Source: Iphione sp. A-MEVVRFRX5 (taxonomy: Eukaryota). Taken from it: DNA of 64,000 nt. Both the position numbers and the translations under genes were made by a program. Location: NCBI GenBank assembly GCA_976226885.1, contig OZ320316.1:36084001-36148000 (forward strand), read 5' to 3'. Below, piece after piece: positions 1-40,200 of this stretch. Position 1 is the first letter of the stretch, and every line of letters starts with the position of its first letter. The notes below the pieces were generated by a model. The model did not search any database, was not told the origin of the DNA, and worked only from the letters and a program-made list of their open reading frames with translations.

Positions 1-228
1 TATGTTCTGGCAGAATATTGACGCCAATGTCTATTACAAATTTACTGTTGAACAATAAATAGGTTCTCCTCCTTGCAAAGATAGGATGACTGGTATTCAC
101 AGTTAATACCCCATCTTGGTAGACTCGGTACTGTGACCGAACCGCAAGATTAGCCGGTAGTTGCTATGAGGCCCAAATGATCCATGTAGTACAAAGGATT
201 AAATGATTCTTGAATATAGGGTACTTAC

Positions 229-309
229 CCAGTGATCCTCCCACACGCCTTTGACGATGGCCGGGCCGAAGGAGCGAGCAGAGTTGAAACTGCCTCCAGT
301 GTACGGGAT
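229..309 (-). CDS. Aquaporin (MIP family), second coding exon, containing the second NPA-type box
   Basis: Minus strand reads ctctctag|ATCCCGTACACTGGAGGC...GATCACTGG|gtaagt = [27 protein letters not shown]. The exon is 81 bp, phase 0-0, and joins exon 1 (...GAELFA) in frame. Later exons lie beyond the window start. Confidence 0.93.
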
Positions 310-1949
310 CTAGAGAGGGAGTAATACAGAGAAAAAGATCTCTAGTTTATACGACATGCAGGTGCTAAAATAAATCATATTCTCTTATATAATTGATCAA
401 TTTGTGTATCTAGGGAAAACTGTACGCAGCTTCACTGCACAAAGGCTTCAATCGCCGAATTCAATACAATGATTCAAAATCAGACATTACTAGTACAAAG
501 TAGCATTCGATGCTAGGTCTAAAGTGCCACTTATATTGTTATAAGTTCGAAACTCATACTAATCTTATTAGACGTGAAGAGAAAGCCTCGTTATGTTATC
601 AACCCCCACATAATCGAACAAGGCCATTTCATCGTCAATGGACTTTCAAACTACCCACTGAAATAATCGTTGAAAAGATAACAGGCAGACTAGCTCAGGC
701 AATCTCAAACTTCTTTAAGTCCACTCAGGACTTCTCGTCGCATCAAATGGAATTATCACATCATTCACAGATTCTTGTTTTTTCATTTACAGATTCTGTC
801 AACTGCGCCACAACAAATTAATCCGGCATCGAATGTTGCATAATACATTTTCGTGATAAAATATTCGTTATCCCTCATTTTGTATTTGTGAATTGTCACT
901 CTCATTATACAAGTACCTGAGCAGAAATGGCCAAGATTAAGTTTACTTTTTAGAGGTACCTTGACAAGACGTGTATTGAAATTGAAGTTGAACTTGAGGG
1001 AAACAAAAAGTGATGCGAAACAAGTATTTTACAGTAAAGTACTTCTTCTTCACCAGCCTTCTTCAACCTTCTATTCACCAAAACATGGACTAATTATCAC
1101 GACCATTGTTTCCATTACCTACAAAAATGTCTTTCCTAAACCATTTCTATTAAGGCACATTCAAGCTGAGCTTTGCTTACACTCTAACATCCAAGTAATG
1201 ACATTTCAGTATGAACTCTTTTTATTCGTGCATAGATGCACGACGCCTGATGCCAAGTGAAGTACTAGACTAGCCGATTGTAATTTGCCTGGTTCATTAT
1301 GCTCTAAATGGAGCCCTTGGGACGTTCAGAAATTGCCCTTCGCAGCTACTGATTGGCTGTAAAAGCATTGTCAAACAGCTCATTTCGTGAATTTTAGAGT
1401 GATTTAATAGCATCAACGTGTAAGTAGGGAATGGGAAATGATGAAGGCTATGCAGAGTGTCGTACGAACAGTGTCCACGGTTTGTAATTACAGGCTTCAT
1501 ACGTGCTGAGTGAAAGTTACTCCATCTGTTTCGTTTCCTGCACGCCACCCACGACATATCCTATATATTTTACTTATTCCTTCATCAAATGCTGAGGTTT
1601 TCCATTTTCCGGAATAATATGCTTAGAACGGATTCATTGACCCTTGCCATGGTTTTGAAAGTAATGTTTATTCGTCTTCCTTTCTGCAAATCTCACCCAC
1701 AAGAAAATAAACAACGGTAGGAAGGAATATTGTCTTCATGCGGAACAATAAAATGTCTTATTACAGTGGTATGCATGAGGAATTATGCACAATACAATAA
1801 GAATAGGAAAGCCAAATAAGTCAGACTGCCACAAATGGATGGGCTAATTCCACATTTGTTATATCCCTCAAGTAGCACTGGTCGCACGGTTTATCGTTCT
1901 CTTTGAGGCAGTAGACACTCATCAACGTCAGCCTTGCCGCTTGTTAGGC

Positions 1950-3300
1950 ATTTTCTATGGGTCGTTCGGTACACACACGTCAACCTTGAGTACTGAGGGG
2001 AGGGGGTCCTGGAAAAATGTATTCTTGGTGGGGAAGGTAAAGTCAGGGGCGGCACCTCCTAGTACGTAATTAGCCTTGCCATGGACCATCATCTTTAACA
2101 CCTAATGTCGACGGTGAGTAGGTAAAAAGGGTACTCTAGACTTATGCCGCACCGAAAACGTCTTGGTGTTTTTTGTGTCTTTTTTTTTGCATACAGGCCA
2201 AGACCCGGGTGCCCATGACGGAGCAAAAAACACTTTCTTCAGATCAGGATAATGTGAACTGATGATGGAAGGAATTTTTTTCACCAGCGTGGAACAGTTC
2301 ACGTGGTCGCTACCCGGGGTTCTTTCTTTGACTAGCCTCGTCAACATCACCGATGATTTTAAAGAGGCAAAATTCGGTTGATGGGTATCATGTCTTTCCT
2401 GATGTTATATAAGGATTTGCATGCAAGAAATACTATGCTCGGTTTGTGCTTGGAGATGCATAGGAATAGCAACTTTAAAAGACGCCTGGTGTAGTCAGGG
2501 TTGTTGCACGGAATAGATGCCAGGGTTATTCACCTTGAAAGGAAGATCTGCATGCAGTCAATGTGCGGGCATTTTTTCAGGTGTGCATGGAGGCTGATTG
2601 CCAAAGAAGTCCATCATTAAAGGGAGAACTCTAATCGTTCATAAACCCGCATACACTGCTGTAAACTGTATACTTGAAGAGGACAATTATAAATCGGAAG
2701 GTGATACCTGCGGACTGGAAGATTCTGTTGAACAGCATAAAACTAAATACGGCAGACACATCGCGATCGTTCTTCTATAAATCTTGTTTTGTCTCGTCGG
2801 GATGAATAGTAATTTTAAGCTTATACTAGCGAAATGGCACCGCAATGGTGATTTTTATGACATTACAGATATAGACAGTGTGTGGACCATGGTTATCGAT
2901 TGTTCCCAGGGGCGGAAAGCTCATCTGAAATGTATGTTATGCTCAGGCAATGGTAAGATTCCCATCGCAAGATTACTTCACCACCACTTTCTTCCCTAGC
3001 ATTTTATTATCCAGCGAACTCCTCCGGAATGATCATTACAATTAGAACACAAGTTCGTGCCCTGGATTTTCCTAAAACAGGAAATTGGAAGGCGAAAAGA
3101 TGGGCAATAAGTATGCCAGCATTCGTATTTCAACTTTGATATGAGGTCATGGCCTGTGATTTGGCCTCTGATGGTCACCCCTATACTCTGCAGTATCCTG
3201 GGGTCGACGTGAATCCGACAAGAATTTGGCAGTTAATAGGTGCGGGCCATGATACATTAAACTGCAAGTGTGTCTGGCGAGACCTGTTTCCCATGTTGGA
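1950..3300 (-). mobile_element. Highly decayed Penelope-like retroelement RT fragment
   Basis: Frameshifted minus-strand pieces resemble Penelope RT motifs: ARTY*LP (cf. FYxLPKIHK), FASISLKLLFIP (cf. SxDVxSLYTNIP), SPFNDGLLWQ...KNARTL (cf. FxFNxxxYxQ...KxAPTL) and ISSHYPDLKKVFFAP (cf. LQSDPDLKKVFP). Boundaries approximate. Confidence 0.5.
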
Positions 3301-5088
3301 GACGCTATCAGCTTCAGTAAACGGACGACACCCCATCCAGCCAGAATTCACAGCCAAGCAACACTATTGTAACGTGACTAGCGTAGAGAGAAATGAGAAG
3401 TCAACGGACTGAGTAAAAATAATCTTGAGAAAAAGTAGAATATAAGTTTCACTCCAATATACACTAAATCGTTGTGCATGGAATGGTCTCTCGTGTGTGC
3501 AAAGAGAAAGGGTCTGTTTATTCCAAAACATGGGTTTATATATGACAGTGTTACATAAGAGTGACTAAAAATAGGATGTCTAGACACCTGCTTATGCGCA
3601 GCAAATAAACAATCCGCGCAGTACCCCTACTACACAGCATCACAATCCGTGAGGTACCTCTACTACGCAGTAACTCTACTGGTCTGGAAGTCGTCACGGA
3701 TCGCACCCCATCCCGGATCACGGATTCCGTTACGGACCGTTCTCACGGACCAACCATCCTTCTAACGCTATACGCTCCTATGACATGCATACACTACACT
3801 ATTCATTATACAAATTTAGGAAGCAATGCACCACGAATTAATGAAGCATAATCACGTTATTAATCCACAAGAAATTCTTTACAGTAACGATACATTCGTT
3901 TTAATCGTATACATCGTATCAACGTGTGCCGCATACGCAATATGGCCGTAAGGAGAAAGTCTGGCAGGGATTCAACGACGGGTAAGGGTGCTACCCTGAA
4001 GTGCAAATTTATCCACAGCTTTAAACCTTCAGTTGTTAAGACCTTAATCTATAATCGACGGGATTGGATTAGCATTCTTGGAACTTGGTGAAAGCGGAAG
4101 ATGAACTAAAAGGCAATCAATATAGTGCTGTGGGTTGTTGAGATAGCCAGGCTTCTCGGGAATATTCTCCTCCGTTTTGAAGCTTGATTATTATCCTTTA
4201 TGTGAACATATACTACGCATTTAGCGATGCCTTTCCCCCTGGGAGCAGGTGGTCTCCTAGGAAACATTAAACTGTGAAATCATGTATGAGAATCAGAAGA
4301 TTTAAACATTGCACATCACTGCCTGTGACAGAAAAGCAACAGAGTTGTGTTGTTTAGCTGGAAGCGAACCAATTATTTTTTGGTTCCGTGACAGCTAAAA
4401 CATCCGTAACTGTTGCCATGTGGTGAGGTTAATGCGGGGACCGATGGTTGCCAAGTAAATGCACCACAACTGTGTATATACAAAAGTGTTAGATTACAAA
4501 CAGAGGTCCCATTTAAGTCGATCTAAGGCTCAGCAGACCTATGGCTAATGCACATTATGCCGCCATTAATTGATGTGCACGGTCTTTGTGAGCTTGGATG
4601 TGATACATGTGTTACTGTTGTGATGTGCGTAGATGGCACGTTGAGGAGACTGGTTTCATGCGTTTTGGGAAATAAGTAAAGCTTGTTTAGTATTTTTGCG
4701 AACATCTTTTCAGCAGCCCTGAAGGAAAACTAAAATAAATAAATATTGAAATCTTACAAGACATGTTCAGAGCAGTACTTGAGACTGCTGCCAAGAAGCG
4801 TGCTTGTCTATTCAATATATAATATAACATTATTACACTGGTGTTTGAGTGTTTGTGCTTATCAGTCTAGTCATTATCAGAAAAAAAAGAACTGTCTATG
4901 ATGTTGTAGATTTATAACGTGTAGAGGCGAATATTCGCTTCTAGTACATCTGCTCTGTGACCTTTCTTTATACAAAGTGGCAGATTTGCTGCTAGCGTGC
5001 CCGATCGCTGTCGATGTTTGTTTAACTAGGGCTGGAATTCCTCACGCAAGAAAAAGAGGCATGCTGGTCGAAGGTGGCACTAATCTGG

Positions 5089-5146
5089 ATTAATCACGTG
5101 GTCAGTGACGTCATCCAAGGGATGAGCTGTGCGCAATCTAGCCATT
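5089..5146 (+). repeat. DIRS left inverted terminal repeat
   Basis: 5089-5125 is the exact reverse complement of 11457-11493; 5116-5146 is the exact reverse complement of 11659-11689. Confidence 0.93.
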
Positions 5147-6727
5147 CTGTGCTTGTTGCTTGGAGCGTGCGGACGTGTCCTAACGCTCCTCGTGACCTAG
5201 TCTGTCCTCTCCTCTCTTAGCGGATGCTGAGAGAGGGGGGACACCTCGAGTATGTAAGGGTTGTACGAGGCCCCCCATCTGGCCAAATACAATCCTGGCA
5301 TATTCACTCTTGCCTAGGGGTACGCTCTCTATGAGAATAACCCCTTATTCCGACACACCCTGGCCTTCCTGGGGAGTGTCGAAGCTGAACATGGTAACAT
5401 GCTGGTAACATCACTAACCTTGTTTCAGAAGTCTCCTTGAGGCATCCTGTATGAACCCAGGAGTAATCCCTCGGAGCCTCCAGAGGCACCCTGTAAATTA
5501 CAGGCATAATCCCTCGGAGTTTTCATTCCCAGTAGGTTTCCCGCACAAAAACGGGAATAAATCCTCGGGAACAGGTCGGGCCCCGGCCCGCACCGAAGTT
5601 CTGCACCGATCCGGGTCCTACGGGCAACTTCTGCCCGAAAATCCGAAGTCGCTGCAGAACGCTGAAACTAGATGGGCACATTGCGGGCCAGACCCGCAAA
5701 GCACCCACGAAGTTTCGGAAAGATCCGACGAACTCGGGTTCTCGGATTTTTTCCTGGCCATACGGAGCTGAAACTCGGTAAGCACGTTACGGGCCTGGCC
5801 CGCAGTGCTCCGGGAACGCTCCGGGAACATTCCGGATAAGTTCGGAATGAAAATCCAAAATGGCCGCAGCCCGCCAAAACTTTGGGAAAAGTACACACAA
5901 CGTACATGCTTTGTTCCCACAAAGGCGCAGCCTCGCACTGACGCGCAGGCGGGTACAAAGGCCACCCCTGCTACGGGGTCCCCCACGGGCGCCCGCGTCC
6001 TGTGACGTCACGGGAGCGCGGACGTGGGTGGAAGCGGTCAAAAATGTTTGTACCGTCCCCCCGGAGGCGTAGCCGAAAGCGCGGCGTGGACCCGCGAGTA
6101 GACTCCCTCCGGGACTACGGCCACTTCGTTATGGTCCCCCGACCATAAGTCTGGCCGAAATGCTCCGATTCCTCTGAGAATTGGCACGTACATCCGTCCC
6201 ACTCGGGGCTACGTGCATTCCAAAAATGGAGTTGATACGACAATTCCCGGCAAAGTTATGCCCGAAACAGTGGTTACGTTTTCGCCGAGTTCGGGTGCGG
6301 GAGACACCATGTCGGGAGACCTCGGGTCTCAGAGACCTAAGTCCTCAGAAACTTGCGCATGGGTCTCAGGAGTGCACACAAAAAATTTCGCGCGCATAGG
6401 ACCAACGGTTCAAAAGTTATCGCGAAAACACTGCCCCTACCTATAGTTTGGCATTGATGGCCAAGATGGCCAGAGATGGCAAAAGGGGGGGGACAGTCCA
6501 AACGAGAGCATGGGGACAGTCCAAACGAGGGTGGGGGACGGTCCAAACATGGACCCCCATCCCTTATCGTTTGTTCAGTGATAAGGGCGAGAGAGTGGAC
6601 CTGGGTGTAAGCACCCAGGAGGGGTTCATAAGGGACCCCTGGAGAGGATTCCAGACATCTGCTGACCACTTGCTGATCAGTAAAGAAGTCCAGTGGAACT
6701 CCAGAAAATCTTCACCACCATCTCACC

Positions 6728-8287
6728 ATGGCAGAACAGCACTCCGAAATCGAAGTGGAGAAGTTCAGCTCAGGGCCTGACTCTGAAGCTGAAGTTACCT
6801 TCCCCACCCTTCAGTGTGGCCAGATTGACCCTCAGGAAAATCTGGATGACACCCAACCCGATCCGGCCTTGGATCTGGGTAAGGGTTCAGCGACCGGGCC
6901 GGTTCTGGCCCTGGGTGGTCCCAGTTCGGGGACCCCTAGGATTCCGGTCGTCCACAAAGGGTCGAAGGGCGGCGTCACAAAGCAGACCCCCAAAGGAGCA
7001 GCCACCCCCAAACCGGGACACGGCAAGCCATCGGGTTCGAAGCTGGCCTCGGAGGCCATCCCCGACAGGGGCAGGTCCGAGAGGTCGGACCGGAAGCGAC
7101 GACGCATTCGGTCTAGGTCAGGGTCCGGTTCGGGATCCCGGTCTAGGTCCCGGTCGTCATCAAGACGCCTGTCCGGGGGCTCGGCTGACTGGGGCAGAGC
7201 TTTTGGAAGTGAGCAAATGCTCATGGCGATGCGCTGTATGGCGGAGGCCTGTGCGGACCGCATGGGACTAGGCCGCGGCGAGTCCCCCCGGTACAGGGGG
7301 CACAAAAGACGGAGACACCAGATCTCCAGCTCGGAGTATTCCAGCAGCGAGGAGGAGCCATGGGAGGAGGACAGCGTTCTGTCAGTCCCCGTGGTCCCCG
7401 CCCCAACGGACGTGGGACAAGCGCCGACGGACCCGCCGAGCGCCCCCGTACCTGTGCCAGCCCCGACCGGGGATGACACGGCGACACAGGCCCCAGCTCA
7501 GAACAGTCGCCTGGAGGAGTTCCAGGGAGAGCGTCCCCCGGTGGAGGACAAGGTGACGGCGGCTGCCTCGGAAGCAGTAGAGAGGCTCGTCACTACATAT
7601 TGGAACTTCCCCTTGACCAGGGCGAAGGCCAAGGAGCTTACTGACACCCTGGAAAGGCCGGAAAACCTCAAAGTCCTGAAAAGGACTAGGCTGAACCCGG
7701 AGCTCACGCTCAAGGACTCTGACATCAGCCGAGACAAGCAGGTGGCGGAAATCCTCCACCTGAACCAGTTTGCCGCCCTGCCCCTCCTCGAGATGGTCAG
7801 CGCGTACGATGCAGGGCAACCGCTGGACCCCAAGGAGGTGGTCGCACGGGTGACTACATCCATGAAACTGATGGGCAGAGAGTCCCACCTCCTCAACCAC
7901 CAGAGGAGGGACATCATCCGGTTCCGGCTACCGCCCGCTTACCGCAGACTTTGCGTAACCGGGCCCCAGGAGGACTGGGAGCTCTTGCTGGGTGAGAACA
8001 TTCCGGACCGGGTCAGAGAATGTTCAGAGGCCCGGAAGCTGGAGCAGACGCTGACGACGCGCCGACCCCCAGCGAAGCCGGCCCAACCGACGACGAGACC
8101 CCAGGCCCCCCAGGGCAGATCCGGGTACGGTGGCTCCCATTACGGGCGCCAAGGCGGCAGCAGCCAGCAGAGTCGCTCCAGCCACAGCAGCGGAGGCGGC
8201 GGCCATCGCCAGCAGCCAAAAAACGGCCAGCGCCGGCAGACCAAGAGGTCTGCCACCCACAAGAGCCAGAAGCCGAAGAAGAAGTAG
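6728..8287 (+). CDS. DIRS ORF1, gag-like protein (519 aa)
   Basis: Long ORF directly upstream of pol within the element. Contains an RS-rich and basic tract, a helical central region and a basic, low-complexity C-terminus. Assignment is positional. Confidence 0.85.
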   Translation: MAEQHSEIEVEKFSSGPDSEAEVTFPTLQCGQIDPQENLDDTQPDPALDLGKGSATGPVLALGGPSSGTPRIPVVHKGSKGGVTKQTPKGAATPKPGHGKPSGSKLASEAIPDRGRSERSDRKRRRIRSRSGSGSGSRSRSRSSSRRLSGGSADWGRAFGSEQMLMAMRCMAEACADRMGLGRGESPRYRGHKRRRHQISSSEYSSSEEEPWEEDSVLSVPVVPAPTDVGQAPTDPPSAPVPVPAPTGDDTATQAPAQNSRLEEFQGERPPVEDKVTAAASEAVERLVTTYWNFPLTRAKAKELTDTLERPENLKVLKRTRLNPELTLKDSDISRDKQVAEILHLNQFAALPLLEMVSAYDAGQPLDPKEVVARVTTSMKLMGRESHLLNHQRRDIIRFRLPPAYRRLCVTGPQEDWELLLGENIPDRVRECSEARKLEQTLTTRRPPAKPAQPTTRPQAPQGRSGYGGSHYGRQGGSSQQSRSSHSSGGGGHRQQPKNGQRRQTKRSATHKSQKPKKK

Positions 8288-10229
8288 AGGTGGGTACCAG
8301 TTTACCTACTTCCCCAGTTGATGGTCTTGTTTCATGTTCGCTCACCCCAGGTCCCTTCAAAGCAGGGAGAGTGGCAGACAGGGCAGACAGCTGGGACCGC
8401 CTGACGGGGAACTCCTACATCCGCGGACTAGCGCGGGAGTCACCCTAGACCTCTCCGGTTTCCCGACCCAGGAGACCACACCGTCAGTGCCGGAATCGCA
8501 CAAGGATTTTGACGTATTCCGCCGACTGGTGGACGACATGTTGGAGGAGGGAGTTGTGGAGAAGGCAGGCCCTTCGGACCGTGCATTGGTATCCACCATC
8601 TTCCTCCGGCCCAAGAAGGACGGGACCCACAGAGTGATCCTGAACTTAAAAAAGTTCAACGAGTGGGTCCCCCACCAACATTTCAAGATGGACAATCTAT
8701 CGGCCGTCCTCCCTCTGTTGGGGAGGAACTTTTACTTTACGTCGGTAGACATTGTCCACGCATACTTCTCAGTTGCGGTTCGGGAAAGAGACAGGGACTT
8801 TCTCCAGTTCATACTGGGGAAAGACAGGTACCGCTTCACCTGCCTCCCAAACGGGCTGGCATCCGCGCCGCGGATGTTTACTCAGATGATGCGGGCAGTT
8901 CTGGGCGAGGTCAGGCAGCGCACCGATGCCATCATCTCGGCCTACCTCGATGACATTCTGGTCTGCCACAGAGACGCCGGGATAGTGTCTCAGGGCACCA
9001 AGGTCCTGGTCGAGACCCTGCAGGATTTGGGGTTTCTTATCCATCCAGACAAGTCGGTGCTGACGCCCACACAGCGAGTAGAACACCTGGGCTTCGTGAT
9101 TGACTCACCCTCGCTCACTGTCCGCCTGCCCGCAGGGAAGGTGGCGGACATAAAGAAAGCTTGCACGGAGTACCTGCGTAAGGACTCCGCCTCGGTCAGG
9201 CAGCTGGCCTGCCTGGCTGGCAAGCTACAGGCCACCTCCCAGGCTATACCACTGGCTCATCTCTACACTATGAACCTGGTACTGGATAAGAACCAGGGTC
9301 TCCTAGCCTCTCGGGGAGACTATGAGGCCACCACCACTATCTCGGAGAGGTCCAAGCGGGACCTGCAATGGTGGATACGGCACGTTGGCAGTGATGTCAG
9401 GGCCATAAAAGACCCCCCAGTCCAAGTAGAAATCTACACGGACGCGTCGAAGACGGGATGGGGCATGTATGTGGAATCCACAGATTGGTCGTACGGAGAG
9501 GCCTGGACGACACGCACTGCCCGCAGACACATCAACGAGCTGGAGCTCTGGGCAGTGAAGGCAGCCCTGATCCAAGCAGAGTACTTGTGCGTGGGGAAAC
9601 ACGTCCGCATACATACGGACAACACCACCACGCTGCTGACCATCCAGAACAAGGGGTCGGCCAGATCGCCCCCCTGCAACGATCTGGCAAGGGAGATCTT
9701 AGTGTTCTGCGAGAAAAGGAACATCACCCTGACGATGGCCTTCTGCCCGGGGGTGGACAACGTCATGGCGGACGAGGCCAGCCGGCAATACAAAGACTGC
9801 GGGGAGTGGGCCCTCAACCCTGCCGTGTTTGCCACTCTCCTAGAAGAGGAAAGGGGGGGGCACACCCGTATTGACATTGATTTGTTTGCCTCCAACCATA
9901 ACCATAAATGTGACCGTTATGTCTCTTGGGGCTATGACCCAGAGGCCTTCGCCTGTGATGCTTTCTCCCTTGACTGGACAGGTCTGCATGCGCTCATCTT
10001 TCCCCCGTTCTCTGTTATCCCCAGGGTTCTACAGAAGATCAGACGGGAGAGACCGCGGGGGCTGTTGATCCTCCCACACTGGAGGACACAGCCCTGGTTC
10101 AATGCGGCCAGGACACTGACCTTCAGAGCGGAGAGACGGCTGCCGGTGGAGACAGACACGCTGACACGGGGCCTCCAAGAACACCACCCGTGCGCAGGGA
10201 GGATGCACCTCTGGATCCTGACCCTATGA
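8020..10229 (+). CDS. DIRS pol (RT, RNase H, adenine-methyltransferase-like domain), with a 1-nt frameshift near 8435
   Basis: YLDD at 8943-8954; LPNGLASAPRMF; RNase H motifs YTDASKTGWG, HINELEL, HTDN, NVMADEAS; MT-like IDLFAS and IFPPF. The N-terminal AGRV...WDRLT block lies in the 8020-8448 frame; the remainder lies in the 8334-10229 frame. Confidence 0.93.
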
Positions 10230-11206
10230 CGGCCAAGCTCATGGGGGTCGGGCTTCCGGGGCCGATCGCCCGCCGCATGGCCCAGGGATGGGCCGTGTCC
10301 TCCAAGAAGCAGTATCTGTCCCTACTGACCCGCTTCGAGGCCTTCTGCTCGGCCAACGGAGTGGACTCGAAGGCACCGGGGCTCCTACATGCCCTGGAGT
10401 TCTTGGAAGGGCTCGTGGAGGAGGACCTGTCCTACTCCACCATCAACGCGGCCCGCAGCCTGCTCTCCAGCTTTGTGCTATTGGAGGGCAACCTCACCTT
10501 CGGCTCGCACCCGCATGTCACGAGGTTCATGCGGGGAGTCAGGCGAGCGAAACCCTTTGTGGCCAAGCACAAAGACGTCTGGGACGTCGGCCCAGTGCTG
10601 AGGAAACTGGCCACTTGGGGCGAGGCGCACACCCTCAACCTGGAGAGGCTCACCAAGAAGACGGTGACCCTATGCCTACTGGCCTCCGGGCAGAGGGTGC
10701 AGACCCTCCAAGTAGCAAAACGAGAGGACGTCCGCTTCGACCACGATGCCTGCACAATCAGGATATCGGGACGTCTGAAGCACTCGAGACAGAATTTCGA
10801 GAACCCCACCTTGACTTTCCATCCCTTCGAGGACAAGACGTTGTGCGTCTATGACCACCTTGCAACGTATATCGCTGCAACAGACGCGTTTCAACACAAG
10901 GGTGCGCTGTTCGTGGGCTATTCCCACAAGGTCCCTGTGACGGGGTCAACTCTGGCCAAGTACACCAAGGACACGCTGAAGTCCTGTGGCCTAGATACGG
11001 ACACCTTCACGGCCCACAGCACGAGATCGGCCTCCACCAGTAAAGGCCTGCAAATGGGCCTGCCGCTGGACACTATCCTGAAGGCGGGAGGCTGGTCAGA
11101 CGAGTCAACGTTCACGCGGTTCTACAAACGACCGATTCGGCGGCCAGGAGATTTCTGCCGCACGATTCTAGAAAGCGCGAACACGGCCACGGACTCAGGT
11201 GTTTAA
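10226..11206 (+). CDS. DIRS tyrosine recombinase (about 326 aa from ATG 10226; the frame is open from 10190)
   Basis: Catalytic set is recognisable: SGQRVQTL (R), LKHSR (K), AHSTR (HxxR), GWS (W) and RFY (Y). The N-terminal SSKKQY...YSTINAARSLLS block resembles the core-binding domain. Confidence 0.95.
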   Translation: MTAKLMGVGLPGPIARRMAQGWAVSSKKQYLSLLTRFEAFCSANGVDSKAPGLLHALEFLEGLVEEDLSYSTINAARSLLSSFVLLEGNLTFGSHPHVTRFMRGVRRAKPFVAKHKDVWDVGPVLRKLATWGEAHTLNLERLTKKTVTLCLLASGQRVQTLQVAKREDVRFDHDACTIRISGRLKHSRQNFENPTLTFHPFEDKTLCVYDHLATYIAATDAFQHKGALFVGYSHKVPVTGSTLAKYTKDTLKSCGLDTDTFTAHSTRSASTSKGLQMGLPLDTILKAGGWSDESTFTRFYKRPIRRPGDFCRTILESANTATDSGV

Positions 11207-11456
11207 TAATTGTGCTGTCTCACAATAAGTATACCTTTGTCACCTCGTCGTTACCTTCCATGTGTCCTCAGAAATAAAGGCTTTGTGGCCAAGTTTTTTC
11301 TTAACTCGGCCTTGGAGTGGCTTTTATTAGGGACAAGGGACTGGTTCCCGAAATCCCTACTCGTTGCGGACCACTCACAGGCCTCGGTGGGGGTGTTCTT
11401 CCCCCCCCCGAGGACCAGTGAGGTCCAGGTGCAGGGATACTGGCGCGGTAGACAAA

Positions 11457-11564
11457 TCATCCCTTGGATGACGTCACTGACCACGTGATTAATACTCTAA
11501 TTAAACGAGTTTACGACGTTTGATTAGGATTAATCTAGTGGGAATAGTGACGTCATATCAAGGG
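11457..11564 (+). repeat. DIRS internal complementary region (ICR)
   Basis: 11457-11493 pairs with the left end (37/37). 11490-11564 pairs with 11684-11758 (75/75). The two halves overlap on TAAT. Confidence 0.95.
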
Positions 11565-11658
11565 CCCGCCCTGGAGAACCTTGAGGCCTTACTTGCGTAG
11601 GCACCGGTTCCCTTCCTCACCCAGGATATCCAGTATCCCAGCACCATAATTGGCAAAT

Positions 11659-11758
11659 AATGGCTAGATTGCGCACAGCTCATCCCTTGATATGACGTCA
11701 CTATTCCCACTAGATTAATCCTAATCAAACGTCGTAAACTCGTTTAATTAGAGTATTA
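11659..11758 (+). repeat. DIRS right inverted terminal repeat, with a 3' extension
   Basis: Inverted match to the left ITR followed by a right-end-specific extension that is complementary to the ICR. Confidence 0.93.
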
Positions 11759-14244
11759 GACCCTATGTAATGGACTGGATAATTAATGGTTTTGAGAGTG
11801 TGTTAACTAAAGCCGTTGAATCCTGTGTGATTATAATAAATCACTGAATAAATCACTACCTGATGCCAATCATTCTAGACAAGAAATGAGAGGGCTGTTC
11901 AGCGACTCTTCTGCTCTTCATCATTCCAAACGCTCTTCGTTCTCCCAATCGTTCTTGCTGATCTTCTTTTCTCTTCATAACCAAGGAGATGCTCTCTCCC
12001 CCTGACATTCCTTCAGCGCACTGCACTCTTTCTCTACCCCCCCCCCACAAAAAAAAAGGTTCATCCTAGGGCTCCTACTTCTCTACCCATTTGCCTCTAT
12101 TGCGCTGCTTACTTGCCATCAATCTAAGCATTCTATTCAAGAGATACCTTGGAGCACAGGCCCAGTACCGCCCCCTCCCTCGTCTCGATTAGAAGGCACC
12201 TCATTGCAACCTAACATTCTAATTTACTCTTTTAATCTTCTCAGCATTGAGATAACATTGCTCCACTCCCACGCGTCAGTGACAAAACGTATCTTCTCTA
12301 TGCTGTATTAGAAACTCTGTTGTCGCTTGTTTCTTTGGCCGCTAACATTAAACAGCTTTTCAGAGCTGATACGTGTATTTGGGAGATGGAAAATATTCAG
12401 TTGTAACAGTCAAAACCCCTGTCAACGGGCTAAGCTGTGCTTTCGTCAACTACCTTCGCGCTCAATTAGCTGAGGATTAATCAAATCTTGTGACAATTTA
12501 ATTACATTCTCCAGCGCCTTTCTTAATAGGCCCCTGCACCCTCCCCCTGCTGATTAGGCCGAGATTAGAGCTCCCAATTCATTAGGTTTAATTACCACCG
12601 CGGTCTGGTGGCCTCTCGTCCTTTTAGTGGGCTGTCTCTGGGGGAAGGCAGGATCAGACAGGCCAGGGTTACAGCTAACAATGATGGTGAAAGTTATACT
12701 GGTATTGGCAGTGTTTGCATCGGCAGCAATTGTAAATGGACCATCAACATATCATTCTGGACCTGTTCCAGCCTCTAAATTCGTATGCAATGTTCCTGGT
12801 GAAAGGAGCAGAGTGTATTCATCTTTCTAATGCAGAAGTCTGTAGTACCGTGAGAAGCAATCCAAAGGCAGTCGGATCTGATGCCAATACGATTTAAACT
12901 GACACAGTTGTCCAGTTCTTTACGCAAAAACAGGTGAACCACTATGGAATAAAACAGCCCGCAGGTTGAGCATAAATAGATGGGTAGTCAGCCTTGTTAA
13001 AAACCAATGAAAATTGATCCCTTCTCAATAGCTTTGACTAGGAAGAAAGGTAGTCGTTCGATATACTATCACCATATGCTTAGCTTTCAATGTGTATCAA
13101 TGACAGCAAGGTTCTCCACATGAAGTACTGCAATAGGCATTGTTAGTATGTGCTGGAATCGGTCAACAAAGGTTTGCTCGAGAGGAATGGCTTTAATGTT
13201 GTGGTAGCCGAAGACACTTTAATCAAATGCACTTACATTATGGCTTCCAAACAGAGCGACCTTTTAAAATGCACTGAATAGCCAGCATACTCTTTCAAGC
13301 TTTGTAGTAGGCACATCCAAGCTGTACACACTTTTATTATTCACGAGTCAGTCTTAGGGCTGTCAGACCATCAAAGAGTCTGCTCTAAAAGGGCATTTTG
13401 TTGGCAGGTACCTGCTGAGAGTAAGCTCGTCTAAAACAGCCTTGAACCATGTTTCGTTTAAAAAAATAAAACCAACACTGTCGATCGACGTATCTGTTGC
13501 CAATCAGAAAATAGTATGTAAGAGAGCATCTAAGTGTGCCGCGTAGGAAATGAATAATAGAAGGCTTTTGCCCTAGAGTGATTGGTTCATTGAAGCGACA
13601 CACTAGATAGTACCACTCCCCATGATTAAATATAAATGCTTATGTTAGTGGCTGATTGCAGGGAACGTCAATTATTTCAGGTTTGTATGCATTATTCGAC
13701 GTGCGTGTGATACAGATGTAAATGTAAATGTGCATGAATACAGTGCGTTCCGTGTATGTACATGTCTACCAAAACATTACTCGCTAACCTAAACGTAAAT
13801 CATGAGCTGTAGAATTTTCTAAGGTGTCTAATAGTGGGGAAAAAACATGCATAATATGCGGCTATGCAAATGTGTGTGTCATCTGTTGTCGCACGTTGTC
13901 GTACCACCGCCTTTTCAACAGTGTCCAAAAAGGAAGTGATCCTTTATGTAAATTTTTAGTACATAGGCAATGGCGCTATTTCAACTGTTCACTTGCTGGG
14001 CAGAATAACTCCTTCTGCAGAATAATCGCACTACACTGACGCAGATGCACAATCATACACATGGGCATTTGGCTTAAAATGATACCAGGAACGTGTAACA
14101 GGAAATGCTCGTTTTGATACAATTTGCATACCCCTTCCTCTACGCTTTCAAACCAAGGCAGTTGACCCCTAGATATGTGTCAATTACTTAGAACGTGACG
14201 GACATACAGTCAGGGCCTCGACGTCCCGGTCTTCTGACTCTACC

Positions 14245-14273
14245 CTCTCTCTTTTTCTCTCTCCATCCTCTCG

Positions 14274-14345
<72 letters not shown>
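14245..14345. repeat. (TC)n(AC)n compound microsatellite
   Basis: Directly visible dinucleotide runs. Confidence 0.95.
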
Positions 14346-14418
14346 TAGGTACATATATACACCCACCAGTACTCACAAATACAAGAATCTGAAATAGCTA
14401 AGGACGTGACAGACTTAC

Positions 14419-15192
14419 AGCGAAGAGTTCAGCGCCCAACATGACAAGACCGATGACGAAGGGCGCAGCTGCCCTGAGGCCCTCGCGTGGCTTGTCACGA
14501 GCAGCCAGCGCCGTGAAGGTGACTGCAAACGTGGCGAACAGCTCGACGGCGAAGCCCTTTTCGGCCGACACCCGTAGCATGCTGGCGCCGAGGTTCACCT
14601 GGAACTCGTATGGCGTCAGGCCCAACAGCAGGGCGGCGCCCAGGACGGCACCAAGCACCTGCGCCAGGACGTAGGCGGCGGCACGACCGATGCTCATGCG
14701 ACGCGCGGCCAGCCAGGCCAGCGTGACGGACGGGTTGAGGTGACCGCCACTCACCGGCCGCACGGCGTACACCAGCCCGGCGTAGGCGGCGGCGAAGGTA
14801 GCGGCGATGCGCACCACATCTGGGTCGCGGTCCGGGTGTAGCGTAAGCCACGAGCCGCAGCCGAGGAGAACCAGCAGCAGCGTGCCCAGGCACTCGGCGC
14901 TGAAGGCCTGCAGGAAGCGCGCCGGTGTACCGATACTTCCGCCAACCGTCGACGTACTACTGATGGAACGCGACCGCTCGTTGCGTTCGGTACTCGACGA
15001 GTCGGTGTTCCGGTCTCCGCCGCCACCTCGGGCGCTCTCCGAAGCCGAGGCGGCCATTTTCCCGCAGAAGTCGGTCAGTCTGCCGCACAATGCCCTCACC
15101 TGTTCGAGGCAGTGCGCGCAGCGCTCCCTGGCCCCTCCGCCGCCACTGCCGCCGCCTCTCGACGACGAACCGCCGTTGTCTGAGCGACACAT
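14419..15192 (-). CDS. Aquaporin (MIP family, AQP4/AQP1-like), first coding exon (N-terminus to TM5)
   Basis: Translation includes FLQAFSAECLGTLLLVLLGCGS (TM1), VSGGHLNPSVTLA (first NPA-type box) and GFAVELFATF (TM4). Ends at ...TTCGCT|gtaagt (intron starts 14418). In-frame ATGs at 15192 and 15057. Confidence 0.93.
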
Positions 15193-37209: not shown

Positions 37210-40200
37210 AGAACATGAAAGCTGATTCATCCATGAGGTTATTTGAAATATAAGTGCTTATGTCAACGGTTTTGCTATAGGATCAGGGCTTTCGTAGTTT
37301 TAGTCTCAAATCCGCTGATGTTGGTGACATTGGTGACTATGCACCATGAATTCCTATGCACCATGAGTTTGTACATAAATTCACTAAACTCAATTGAAGG
37401 GAAATGACAAAATAGNNNNNNNNNNNNNNNNNNNNNNNNNNNNNNNNNNNNNNNNNNNNNNNNNNNNNNNNNNNNNNNNNNNNNNNNNNNNNNNNNNNNN
37501 NNNNNNNNNNNNNNNNNNNNNNNNNNNNNNNNNNNNNNNNNNNNNNNNNNNNNNNNNNNNTCAACACGACACGCTATGAAACGGGGGGAGGGGGAAGTCA
37601 GGACTCTCTGTCTTCGACAGGAATTTCCCTGCTGGTGATGCTTCATCGAAAAAAGGAAACTAGCAGATAACACTTATCCAAGAATTAATTCTTGGTAGCA
37701 CGACATCCGTAATTATCGAGTAGTGTAATTCAGAAGGCAAATAACAGTTCACAGCGAATTAAAATATCCAAAGACTCTTTACCAAAATAGTTGTCCCCCC
37801 TGTAATTTTTTTCGATGTTTTCCATGTGTAGGTGAATGCACCAACGATCACGAAAGATGCCAGGAATGGGCGGATCGTGGAGAATGTACAAACAATCCAA
37901 ACTACATGCTGTGGAACTGTGCCAAATCTTGCAAAATTTGCGGAGACGGTAAAGGATACTCTTTAACTTAACACTAACGTTAAAACAGCATGCTCCACAT
38001 TATACATCTTCATGTGCCATTGATCGAGGTGGATACCAAGGTGGATATATAGAGTAGTGTCAGTAACTCTGCTAGAGAGCTATCTTTGCCATGAGCTATC
38101 ATAGTTCAAATTGCAGTGATCACTATACATGTGGTCACAACTCATATGTCTGTGGAGAATAACCCGTCAGCGAGTAAATTATGAGCAATACTATTGACAC
38201 CGGCAACGTTTCATGTTTTCTGTGTTCTTCATGAGAGCAGATGCTGGCTGCGACAACTACAACAGTCAGTGTGAACAGTGGGCGTTGGAGGGATACTGCA
38301 TAGACCCAGACTACCAGGAATATATGAAACGATTCTGTCGACCTGCCTGTCGCGTCTGCGAAGGGGACGACGGTGGTGATGGCGGCGAAGACCCAAGTAA
38401 GATATGCATGTACAATCAGATAGCTGTCAACTGTAATGTTGAAAGTTACGAGAATTGTGCAAAAAAATGCGAAAGGTTTGTGTGACCCTTAACTATGAAA
38501 GGGTCTCTGCTTTTGCACTAAAGGAACGGGTGGGGGGGATATATAGTCTGGGGCTGGCGGTACAACTACATTAAAAGATACCCAAAAACATCAACCCAGA
38601 AATTTTCATCCCAGCAACATCTGCTGGTCTCTGGTAATGATTAGATAGAGCTATAGCAAATGCAATGAAGTATATTTTCTCATATGGCTATCAGCATATA
38701 ATGAATGTTGATGGATTCTGGGCCAACAACAACAAGCAAAACCTGAGTCAAAGACAGTATTTCACATTCTTGTAGATTAATGATATGTGATTGGTAGGTC
38801 TCTGTAGTGATGCCTCAATGGGTGGAATTCACCTGCAGATGTTTACTGACTCAGCTTGAGGTAGAAAATCCATGCTCTGGCATGTTTTCTGATTCCCTAT
38901 GATACAGGGGACAATGTCATTAGACCAATTTGCCTCCCAAGGTAAAACATGCTGATAAGAAATGTATTGTAAAATCAACAGTGTGAATGAGTTACTGCTA
39001 GCTAGGGATTAGATAGGCCTAGATGTGGCAAGGATCCATCCATCAACATATACATGTACTTGTGACGTGCAGTGTAAAGGCTTAATTTTGTTTGCTTGCT
39101 AGGGATTATACTGGTGTGATGAGGATCCACTCATTCATCTACTAGAGACATCCATTGTAATGATCTTCTACTACACTTTTATTAATAATAGCTATGCTGA
39201 AACTTCGAGGATGCTTTTTCATGTGTAATGCTGTAACGTCAACACTACAGATGTTACTTCTAGTTGGTGAATAGATATGTATTGATGTACTGGGGACATA
39301 TATATGCAATGTTATGGTCTAATGATGTTCTAATTCAGCTTGTATTGCTTTTACTTATAACGGGGAATTTTTGAACTTTTTTGTCTCCTGCATCATACTG
39401 GAGATGATGGTGATTTGCCTCATTTAGTAAAACATGCTGATAAGAAATACACTGTAAAATACACCAGTCGGCTATTCCTAATTATTGATCATGTGGGTGT
39501 GGTGAAGGTCCATGCATTGACATACTGGGGACGTACAATGTAAGATACATCAGCTCGTATTGTAGTTAGTTAGACTTGTTGATACTGTTGTTCATGTGAT
39601 CTTGGTCTGTTTCATAATGTTGAAGGTAGTACATTTATGTTATTTGTATTTTCTGCACTTTTGTGGTAAATATTAATTATGAAAAACAACGACTATACTA
39701 TACAGCCATGGAAATCAAATCTTCAAGATAGTGGGACTCAATGAACTTCAATCAAACAGAGCAAGCGCCTTTCGTACCGGCACTAGGAGGTTTTGTCAGA
39801 GAGAGAGACACACACACATATACATGAGGGGAAGATGGAAGACATAGATGTACAGAGAGAGAAACGAGAGAGAAGCAGAGAGTGACAGACAGACAAACGG
39901 AACACATTTACACCAGGACTGTCTTAGATACTCATCTTCAAACGTCCGTCAATACATGTACATATAATATATTCTAGTGTGGGACGTTTACACGGTCAAT
40001 GTTTACTAAAAATAATGTCGTGACAGAGATTCTGTTCATCTCTTTCCAAAATGTATGTTTCCTCCACTGTCGAGCTACGTCGTCCCAGTCTGTTCTTATT
40101 CAGGTAAAGAGTGTAAATTGCTAGCCCCACTGAAACCCTTGCTAATTTCCTTGCTGCATGCAAGTTTGTAGTTAGAAAATGTTTGAGAGGCACTAGCAGC

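Follow-up and report, generated by a model that had tools for sequence, protein, structure and literature searches.

In the classical aquaporins AQP1 and AQP4, the histidine of the fifth transmembrane helix (TM5) and the arginine of loop E face each other at the pore's narrowest ring, known as the aromatic/arginine (ar/R) filter. Water selectivity is linked to this histidine more closely than to any other residue, and the arginine is a main barrier to cations and protons. Here we describe an aquaporin (MIP) gene of an annelid worm, Iphione sp. A-MEVVRFRX5, located on the minus strand of a 64,000-nucleotide stretch of contig OZ320316.1 (assembly GCA_976226885.1, positions 36,084,001 to 36,148,000), which was analysed as a whole and is referred to below as the window, with coordinates counted from its first nucleotide. 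We consider it likely that the gene encodes an AQP1/AQP4-like (classical) aquaporin of an annelid-only group in which the TM5 histidine was long ago replaced by glutamate, with a conserved Glu-Arg pair in the filter and, probably, a low or gated water permeability.

A catalogue of 401 annelid aquaporins has been published by Mucciolo et al. 2021 (Cells, PMC8700629), in which the filter of Alitta succinea AsucAQPa, a member of an annelid-only clade, was given as Phe, Glu, Gly, Arg. AsucAQPa was modelled there with a normal AQP4-like fold and such substitutions were treated as not infrequent; the protein was given no functional test and was not among the transcripts confirmed by reverse transcription PCR (PMC8700629). 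The Phe/Glu/Gly/Arg filter, which an earlier note on this DNA had pointed out, is therefore already in print for Alitta succinea, although with neither explanation nor assay, and is not new in kind.

The sole experimental hint on the effect of an acidic filter residue comes from one engineered mutant. As summarised in PMC9490802 citing Kitchen and Conner 2015, human AQP4 H201E is reported to have a lower water flux, potentially via a salt bridge with R216; the same mutant is also listed in PMC6937295, which gives no H201E result in the passages considered. In both the mutant and the window gene, His has been exchanged for Glu at one and the same filter position, facing the same Arg; however, H201E is a laboratory point mutation, whereas the natural protein adds a nearby Gly and Ala and altered NPA boxes. 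The earlier suggestion of a salt bridge with the filter Arg is a reasonable one and has an experimental precedent in this mutant. Searching the literature for further acidic residues of natural origin at the TM5 filter site yielded nothing of use.

Two further groups of AQP4-related channels with unusual filters were compared. Insect entomoglyceroporins (Eglp) are AQP4-like, and the loss of their TM5 His alters selectivity (PMC8700629), which parallels the variation among annelid neighbours of the window gene; both the Eglp and these neighbours have, however, a small or hydrophobic uncharged residue at the TM5 site, whereas that of the window gene is acidic. The window gene does not match glycerol channels of the aquaglyceroporin or Eglp type, as it has Glu at TM5 instead of a small uncharged residue, and Gly at loop E, where aquaglyceroporins have an aromatic one. 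Vertebrate Aqp14 is likewise AQP4-related with an unusual filter, and some of its members have NPS in the first box (PMC6906440). It is restricted to vertebrates, has five constriction residues that are non-aromatic and a first exon of 3-7 codons out of 5-6 exons, and adjoins aqp0 (PMC6906440). An Aqp14 identity was rejected, since the window gene keeps the filter Phe and has a first exon of 258 codons, and the gene that lies upstream of the aquaporin in a relative resembles GPKOW.

Gene structure and filter residues

The window holds the 5' two thirds of the gene, in two exons separated by a 14.1-kb intron. The features are the following:

14419..15192, minus strand: coding part of exon 1, 258 codons, with a Cys-rich N-terminus, a Ser-rich stretch and TM1 to TM5
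15055..15057, minus strand: Met46 (KMAAS), second in-frame Met and possible alternative start, conserved in all four orthologues
14794..14796, minus strand: Phe133, TM2 ar/R position, aligned with AQP4 Phe77
14728..14736, minus strand: first NPA box, NPS (AAC CCG TCC)
14428..14430, minus strand: Glu255 (GAA), TM5 ar/R position, occupied by His in water aquaporins; placed by HMMER alignment to AQP4 His201
14413..14418, minus strand: splice donor GTAAGT of intron 1
310..14418, minus strand: intron 1, 14.1 kb, containing an antisense DIRS-like retroelement
229..309, minus strand: exon 2, loop E half-helix, 81 bp, 27 codons, with Gly264, NSA and Arg270
283-285, 280-282 and 277-279, minus strand: the three codons of the second NPA box, NSA, in exon 2
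274-276, minus strand: Arg270, loop E filter Arg, in exon 2
223..228, minus strand: donor site of intron 2, GTAAGT; the exon for TM6 lies beyond the window edge

The reading frame of exon 1 is uninterrupted from the ATG at 15192 to 14419, after which comes GTAAGT. A pyrimidine tract plus AG stands ahead of exon 2, and a second GTAAGT stands behind it. Both junctions are in phase 0, with clean GT-AG splice sites. The Pfam MIP profile (PF00230) matched exon 1 at model positions 6-172 (125 bits, E 4e-36) and exon 2 at positions 179-205 (32.5 bits, E 1e-7), and since these positions are contiguous, joining the exons keeps the register of the family profile. The peptides given in the earlier note are located on the minus strand, GGHLNPSVT at 14748-14722 and, in loop E, FNSARSFGP at 288-262. 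No further MIP-like exon was found anywhere in the window by tblastn with eight relatives as queries, and the window therefore contains no alternative exon that would restore His or NPA. The loop E exon of vertebrate classical aquaporin genes is also 81 bp long.

The ar/R filter of the window gene is Phe133/Glu255/Gly264/Arg270 (F/E/G/R). The HMMER alignment of exon 1 with AQP4 ran without gaps through TM5 and placed Glu255 at His201, and in exon 2 Gly264 (the loop E position) stands three residues ahead of Asn267, with Arg270 directly after NSA; both the filter and the NPS/NSA boxes read earlier by eye are thereby confirmed. The same alignment placed Ala223 at the Gln of the AQP4 TM4 motif TFQL, as the note had also proposed. 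In place of two canonical Asn-Pro-Ala boxes, both Asn are kept, while the Ala of box 1 and the Pro of box 2 are changed to Ser. Variant NPA boxes occur in accepted MIP members such as AQP7, AQP11 and AQP12.

The VSGGH motif (xSGGH) and the filter Phe and Arg of classical AQP1/AQP4-like channels are present; the TM5 His of classical water-selective aquaporins is not, Glu255 taking the place of AQP4 His201. The best matches of solved structure were AQP4 and AQP5 (E 1e-22 to 1e-23, HMMER), those of glyceroporins being much weaker. Vertebrate AQP4, as well as AQP1 and AQP5, shares with the window gene the filter Phe and Arg, both Asn and a Cys-bearing N-terminal extension before a second Met. The window gene differs from AQP4 in the changes of His201 to Glu, Ala210 to Gly and the TM4 Gln to Ala, in its NPS/NSA boxes and in having TM1 to TM5 in one exon, and the two are only about 35% identical.

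Conservation in annelid relatives

A word-index search retrieved three close relatives, P0001, P0002 and P0003. Each is a gene call of exon 1 from a genomic contig, and they are 85, 72 and 73% identical, respectively, to the window gene over the channel part of that exon. GAELFA is present in all three; P0001 and P0002 have NPS as their first box, whereas P0003 has NPA. Orthologous 81-bp exons were located in two of the species: in that of P0001 it lies 18 kb downstream (L005:19342-19422) with NSA as the second box, and in that of P0003 only 2.6 kb separate it from exon 1, again downstream (L003:13361-13441), with NPA. These exons share the loop E Gly with the window gene and keep their AG and GT flanks. 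In the species of P0003 the TM6 exon is complete (L008:15394-15669), 20.5 kb past exon 2, and encodes VFWFGPVIGG..., ending in ...TDV. At the same boundary, ...LFA or ...LYA, the gene calls on the genomic contigs of relatives read through and continue with V-S or V-G.

Glu, accordingly, is shared by all three orthologues, but NPS/NSA is found in only part of the clade. The NPA changes and Glu do not form one package, since one orthologue combines NPA/NPA with the same Glu. Because the closest relative has NPS/NSA but a more distant one has NPA/NPA with Glu, we regard the Glu as older and the NPA changes as younger: the TM5 Glu is, judging from the orthologues compared, an old trait maintained by purifying selection, and NPS/NSA is, on the same comparison, a younger state limited to part of the group. 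The Glu codon alternates between GAA and GAG across six relatives, and the Ser codon of NSA is TCT in the window gene vs TCG in its nearest relative. Over the channel core, pairwise dN/dS was 0.04-0.12, with dS above 1, i.e. with saturated synonymous sites. As the orthologues keep Glu with synonymous turnover, the core dN/dS is this low and the splice sites are shared, the gene appears intact and is almost certainly functional rather than decaying, in agreement with the earlier note, which had read the intact frame and splice sites in the same way.

An exhaustive HMMER search of 1.84 billion representatives revealed a single cluster above 50% identity (that of P0001), the next matches being 44-52% identical. 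In an alignment of about 190 MIPs, only the window gene, P0001-P0003, P0056/P0202 and P0057 had Glu at the TM5 site, and Glu is the sole acidic residue in that column. In a maximum-likelihood tree built on the TM1-TM5 region, which did not include AsucAQPa itself, the window gene and P0001-P0003 formed a clade (SH-aLRT 99), as did P0056/P0202/P0057 (SH-aLRT 97). The latter group, which reads ...AELYA and is about 50% identical to the window group, is its sister: the window clade joins it, together with P0055 (Met at the TM5 site), at SH-aLRT 86. Contig walking over 10 kb did not reveal an exon 2 for the sister group. Surrounding annelid AQP4-like clades carry His, Ser, Thr, Val or Leu at the TM5 site, and the named neighbours are annelid (Helobdella robusta, P0074; Dimorphilus gyrociliatus, P0076).

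The neighbouring clades with a variable TM5 site (P0037, P0058, P0061-P0063, P0074 and P0087, with Ser, Thr, Val, Leu, Met and His) also include degenerate boxes, with NPS/NTA in P0037, NTA elsewhere, and VSS for the first NPA together with NPS as the second in P0074.

The published AsucAQPa may belong with this group. Its aligned row reads ...VAVELYAVPISGGGINPARSLGP... followed by VYWFGPILGG, and is full length with NPA/NPA (PMC8700629 alignment); the untrimmed row begins MAPSSDGIRTPRFW and closely resembles P0202. By eye only, P0056/P0202, from the sister group of the window gene, were the database sequences closest to AsucAQPa. Like the window gene, AsucAQPa has an AQP1-like fold, an F/E/G/R filter, the V/ISGGH motif, a MAP/MAA Met before TM1 and, apparently, an annelid-only distribution; unlike it, AsucAQPa has NPA/NPA and ...VELYA, whereas the window gene has NPS/NSA and ...AELFA, the two subgroups being about 50% identical. 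Seven rows of the annelid alignment have ...ELYA at the TM5 site, and AELFA is absent from all of the 401-sequence annelid data set (PMC8700629), so that the subgroup of the window gene is missing there and its sister is represented. The combination of NPS/NSA with the Glu filter is new, yet of a type common in MIPs.

The same survey lends some support to an ordinary water channel, in which Glu would be protonated or turned aside, permeability would be AQP1-like and the odd residues would be lineage noise: its authors regard such substitutions as not infrequent and model AsucAQPa with a normal AQP4-like fold (PMC8700629), and the window gene keeps both Asn, the Phe and the Arg. We find this rather unlikely, given that Glu is invariant, with synonymous codon turnover, across sequences only about 50% identical, that neighbouring clades vary freely at the TM5 site (H, M, S, T, V, L), and that H201E is reported to reduce the water flux of AQP4. 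Nature has kept an acidic residue opposite the filter Arg in worm channels across a deep divergence, with saturated synonymous sites and about 50% identity.

Predicted effect on the pore

As the TM5 site lies opposite the filter Arg, the Glu of the window gene would be able to reach its guanidinium group. We infer that the carboxylate pairs with the Arg, which would neutralise the positive charge of the constriction and tend to retain the Arg in the pore, so that a low or conditional water permeability would be expected, for example with opening upon protonation of Glu. The electrostatic barrier to cations at the filter ring may be weaker, and the central barrier should persist, since the Asn of both NPA boxes are kept. 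The small loop E Gly and the TM4 Ala would probably give space to this pair. A regulated membrane protein anchored to a scaffold, like AQP4, is suggested by the Cys-rich N-terminus, the Ser-rich stretch and the ...TDV end of a relative.

A more specific form of this proposal, in which the Glu-Arg pair serves as a titratable gate or cation site, with pH-dependent opening or selectivity, or with conduction of ammonium, other cations or protons, is speculative and has, in our estimate, a small chance of being correct. If true, it would mean a naturally evolved group of charged-filter aquaporins, with a role in, for example, ammonia excretion or acid-base handling, unlike characterised animal aquaporins.

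A Glu-Arg pair might also plug the pore permanently, leaving a barely conducting or non-conducting aquaporin for adhesion, scaffolding or trafficking, similar to roles that have been put forward for the AQP0 junctions of the lens or for Big Brain in the fly. The decreased water flux reported for AQP4 H201E fits this as well, and so do the long Cys-rich and Ser-rich N-terminus and the PDZ-ligand-like ...TDV tail of a relative. However, the strong constraint on pore-lining and NPA Asn residues argues against such a plug, and the small Gly and Ala around the Glu suggest an open path; we hold a permanently closed pore to be improbable.

Several points weigh against a functional channel with a Glu-Arg filter and reduced or gated permeability. 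The Glu-Arg contact is proposed from homology and from one mutant of the human protein known through a secondary citation, and a pore widened by the Gly and Ala substitutions might offset the effect altogether. The window stops 228 bases past exon 2, so its TM6/C-terminal exon falls outside, and in the closest relative the 19 kb downstream of exon 2 did not reveal a TM6 exon either. The splicing of the window gene would follow from comparative evidence, no RNA run being listed for exon 1. Finally, when exon 1 of the window was compared with its sister L001, with the species of P0003 as outgroup, the window lineage was found to be faster, with 17 unique amino-acid changes vs 3 (chi-square 9.8).

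This faster rate, taken with the changes in both NPA boxes, the unseen TM6 exon and the want of a listed RNA run, could be read as a decaying copy, in which NPS/NSA would mark an early loss of function and the last exon would possibly be damaged. Such decay appears very improbable. Neither the frame nor any of the four splice signals is damaged, dN/dS is about 0.1 vs each relative, and NPS/NSA is common to a relative at dS above 1, with a synonymously different Ser codon. Furthermore, conservative exchanges predominate among the unique changes of the window lineage (I to V, T to A, along with K to R), the GC content at third codon positions (GC3) of exon 1 is 0.79, and CpG is not depleted. The composition of the exon suggests that the faster rate reflects compositional drift or GC-biased substitution rather than decay.

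For a functional channel with the Glu-Arg filter, the value lies mainly in a ready-made natural experiment on charge pairing in an aquaporin filter, with a bearing on how water flux, gating by pH and the exclusion of ions are controlled. Natural controls exist within the clade, in which the same Glu is accompanied by NPA/NPA or by NPS/NSA, and among its neighbours, which carry His, Met, Ser, Thr, Val or Leu.

Terminal regions, gene neighbourhood and intron 1

A Cys-rich N-terminal extension (MCRS...RC..C...C...FCGK) is encoded at 15192-15055 on the minus strand; it is conserved and was also observed in P0001-P0003, P0057 and P0202, the N-terminus of P0001-P0003 being conserved from MCRS onwards. 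The second conserved Met (MAAS or MAP) directly follows this extension, and the published row of AsucAQPa starts at the matching MAP... Met. The long and short starts recall, by analogy, the M1 and M23 forms of vertebrate AQP4. The long form of vertebrate AQP4 carries palmitoylated cysteines. At the opposite end, the C-terminal tail ...ITDV in the species of P0003 (...ISDV in P0055) resembles a class I PDZ-binding tail. Vertebrate AQP4 has a PDZ-binding tail ending in ...SSV.

Upstream of the aquaporin in the species of P0003, a gene on the same strand (L003:3503-4173) matches the GPKOW C-terminal domain; tblastx revealed no exon matching this GPKOW-like neighbour upstream in the window. At 37416-37560 the window has 145 consecutive N, which represent either an assembly gap or a masked stretch.

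Soon after the exon 1 donor, at about 14190-14400 on the minus strand, intron 1 contains dinucleotide microsatellites that translate as CVCVCV... or RERERE.... The same intron harbours the DIRS-like retroelement, which is composed as follows:

6693-11206, plus strand: DIRS-like retroelement inside intron 1, antisense to the aquaporin gene, with long open frames
6728-8287, plus strand: open reading frame of 519 aa with no Pfam match
8334-10229, plus strand: open reading frame of 631 aa, reverse transcriptase and RNase H, plus a weak Dam-methylase-like match
10190-11206, plus strand: open reading frame of 338 aa, tyrosine recombinase

The GC content of the retroelement is about 0.6, vs approximately 0.4 in its surroundings.

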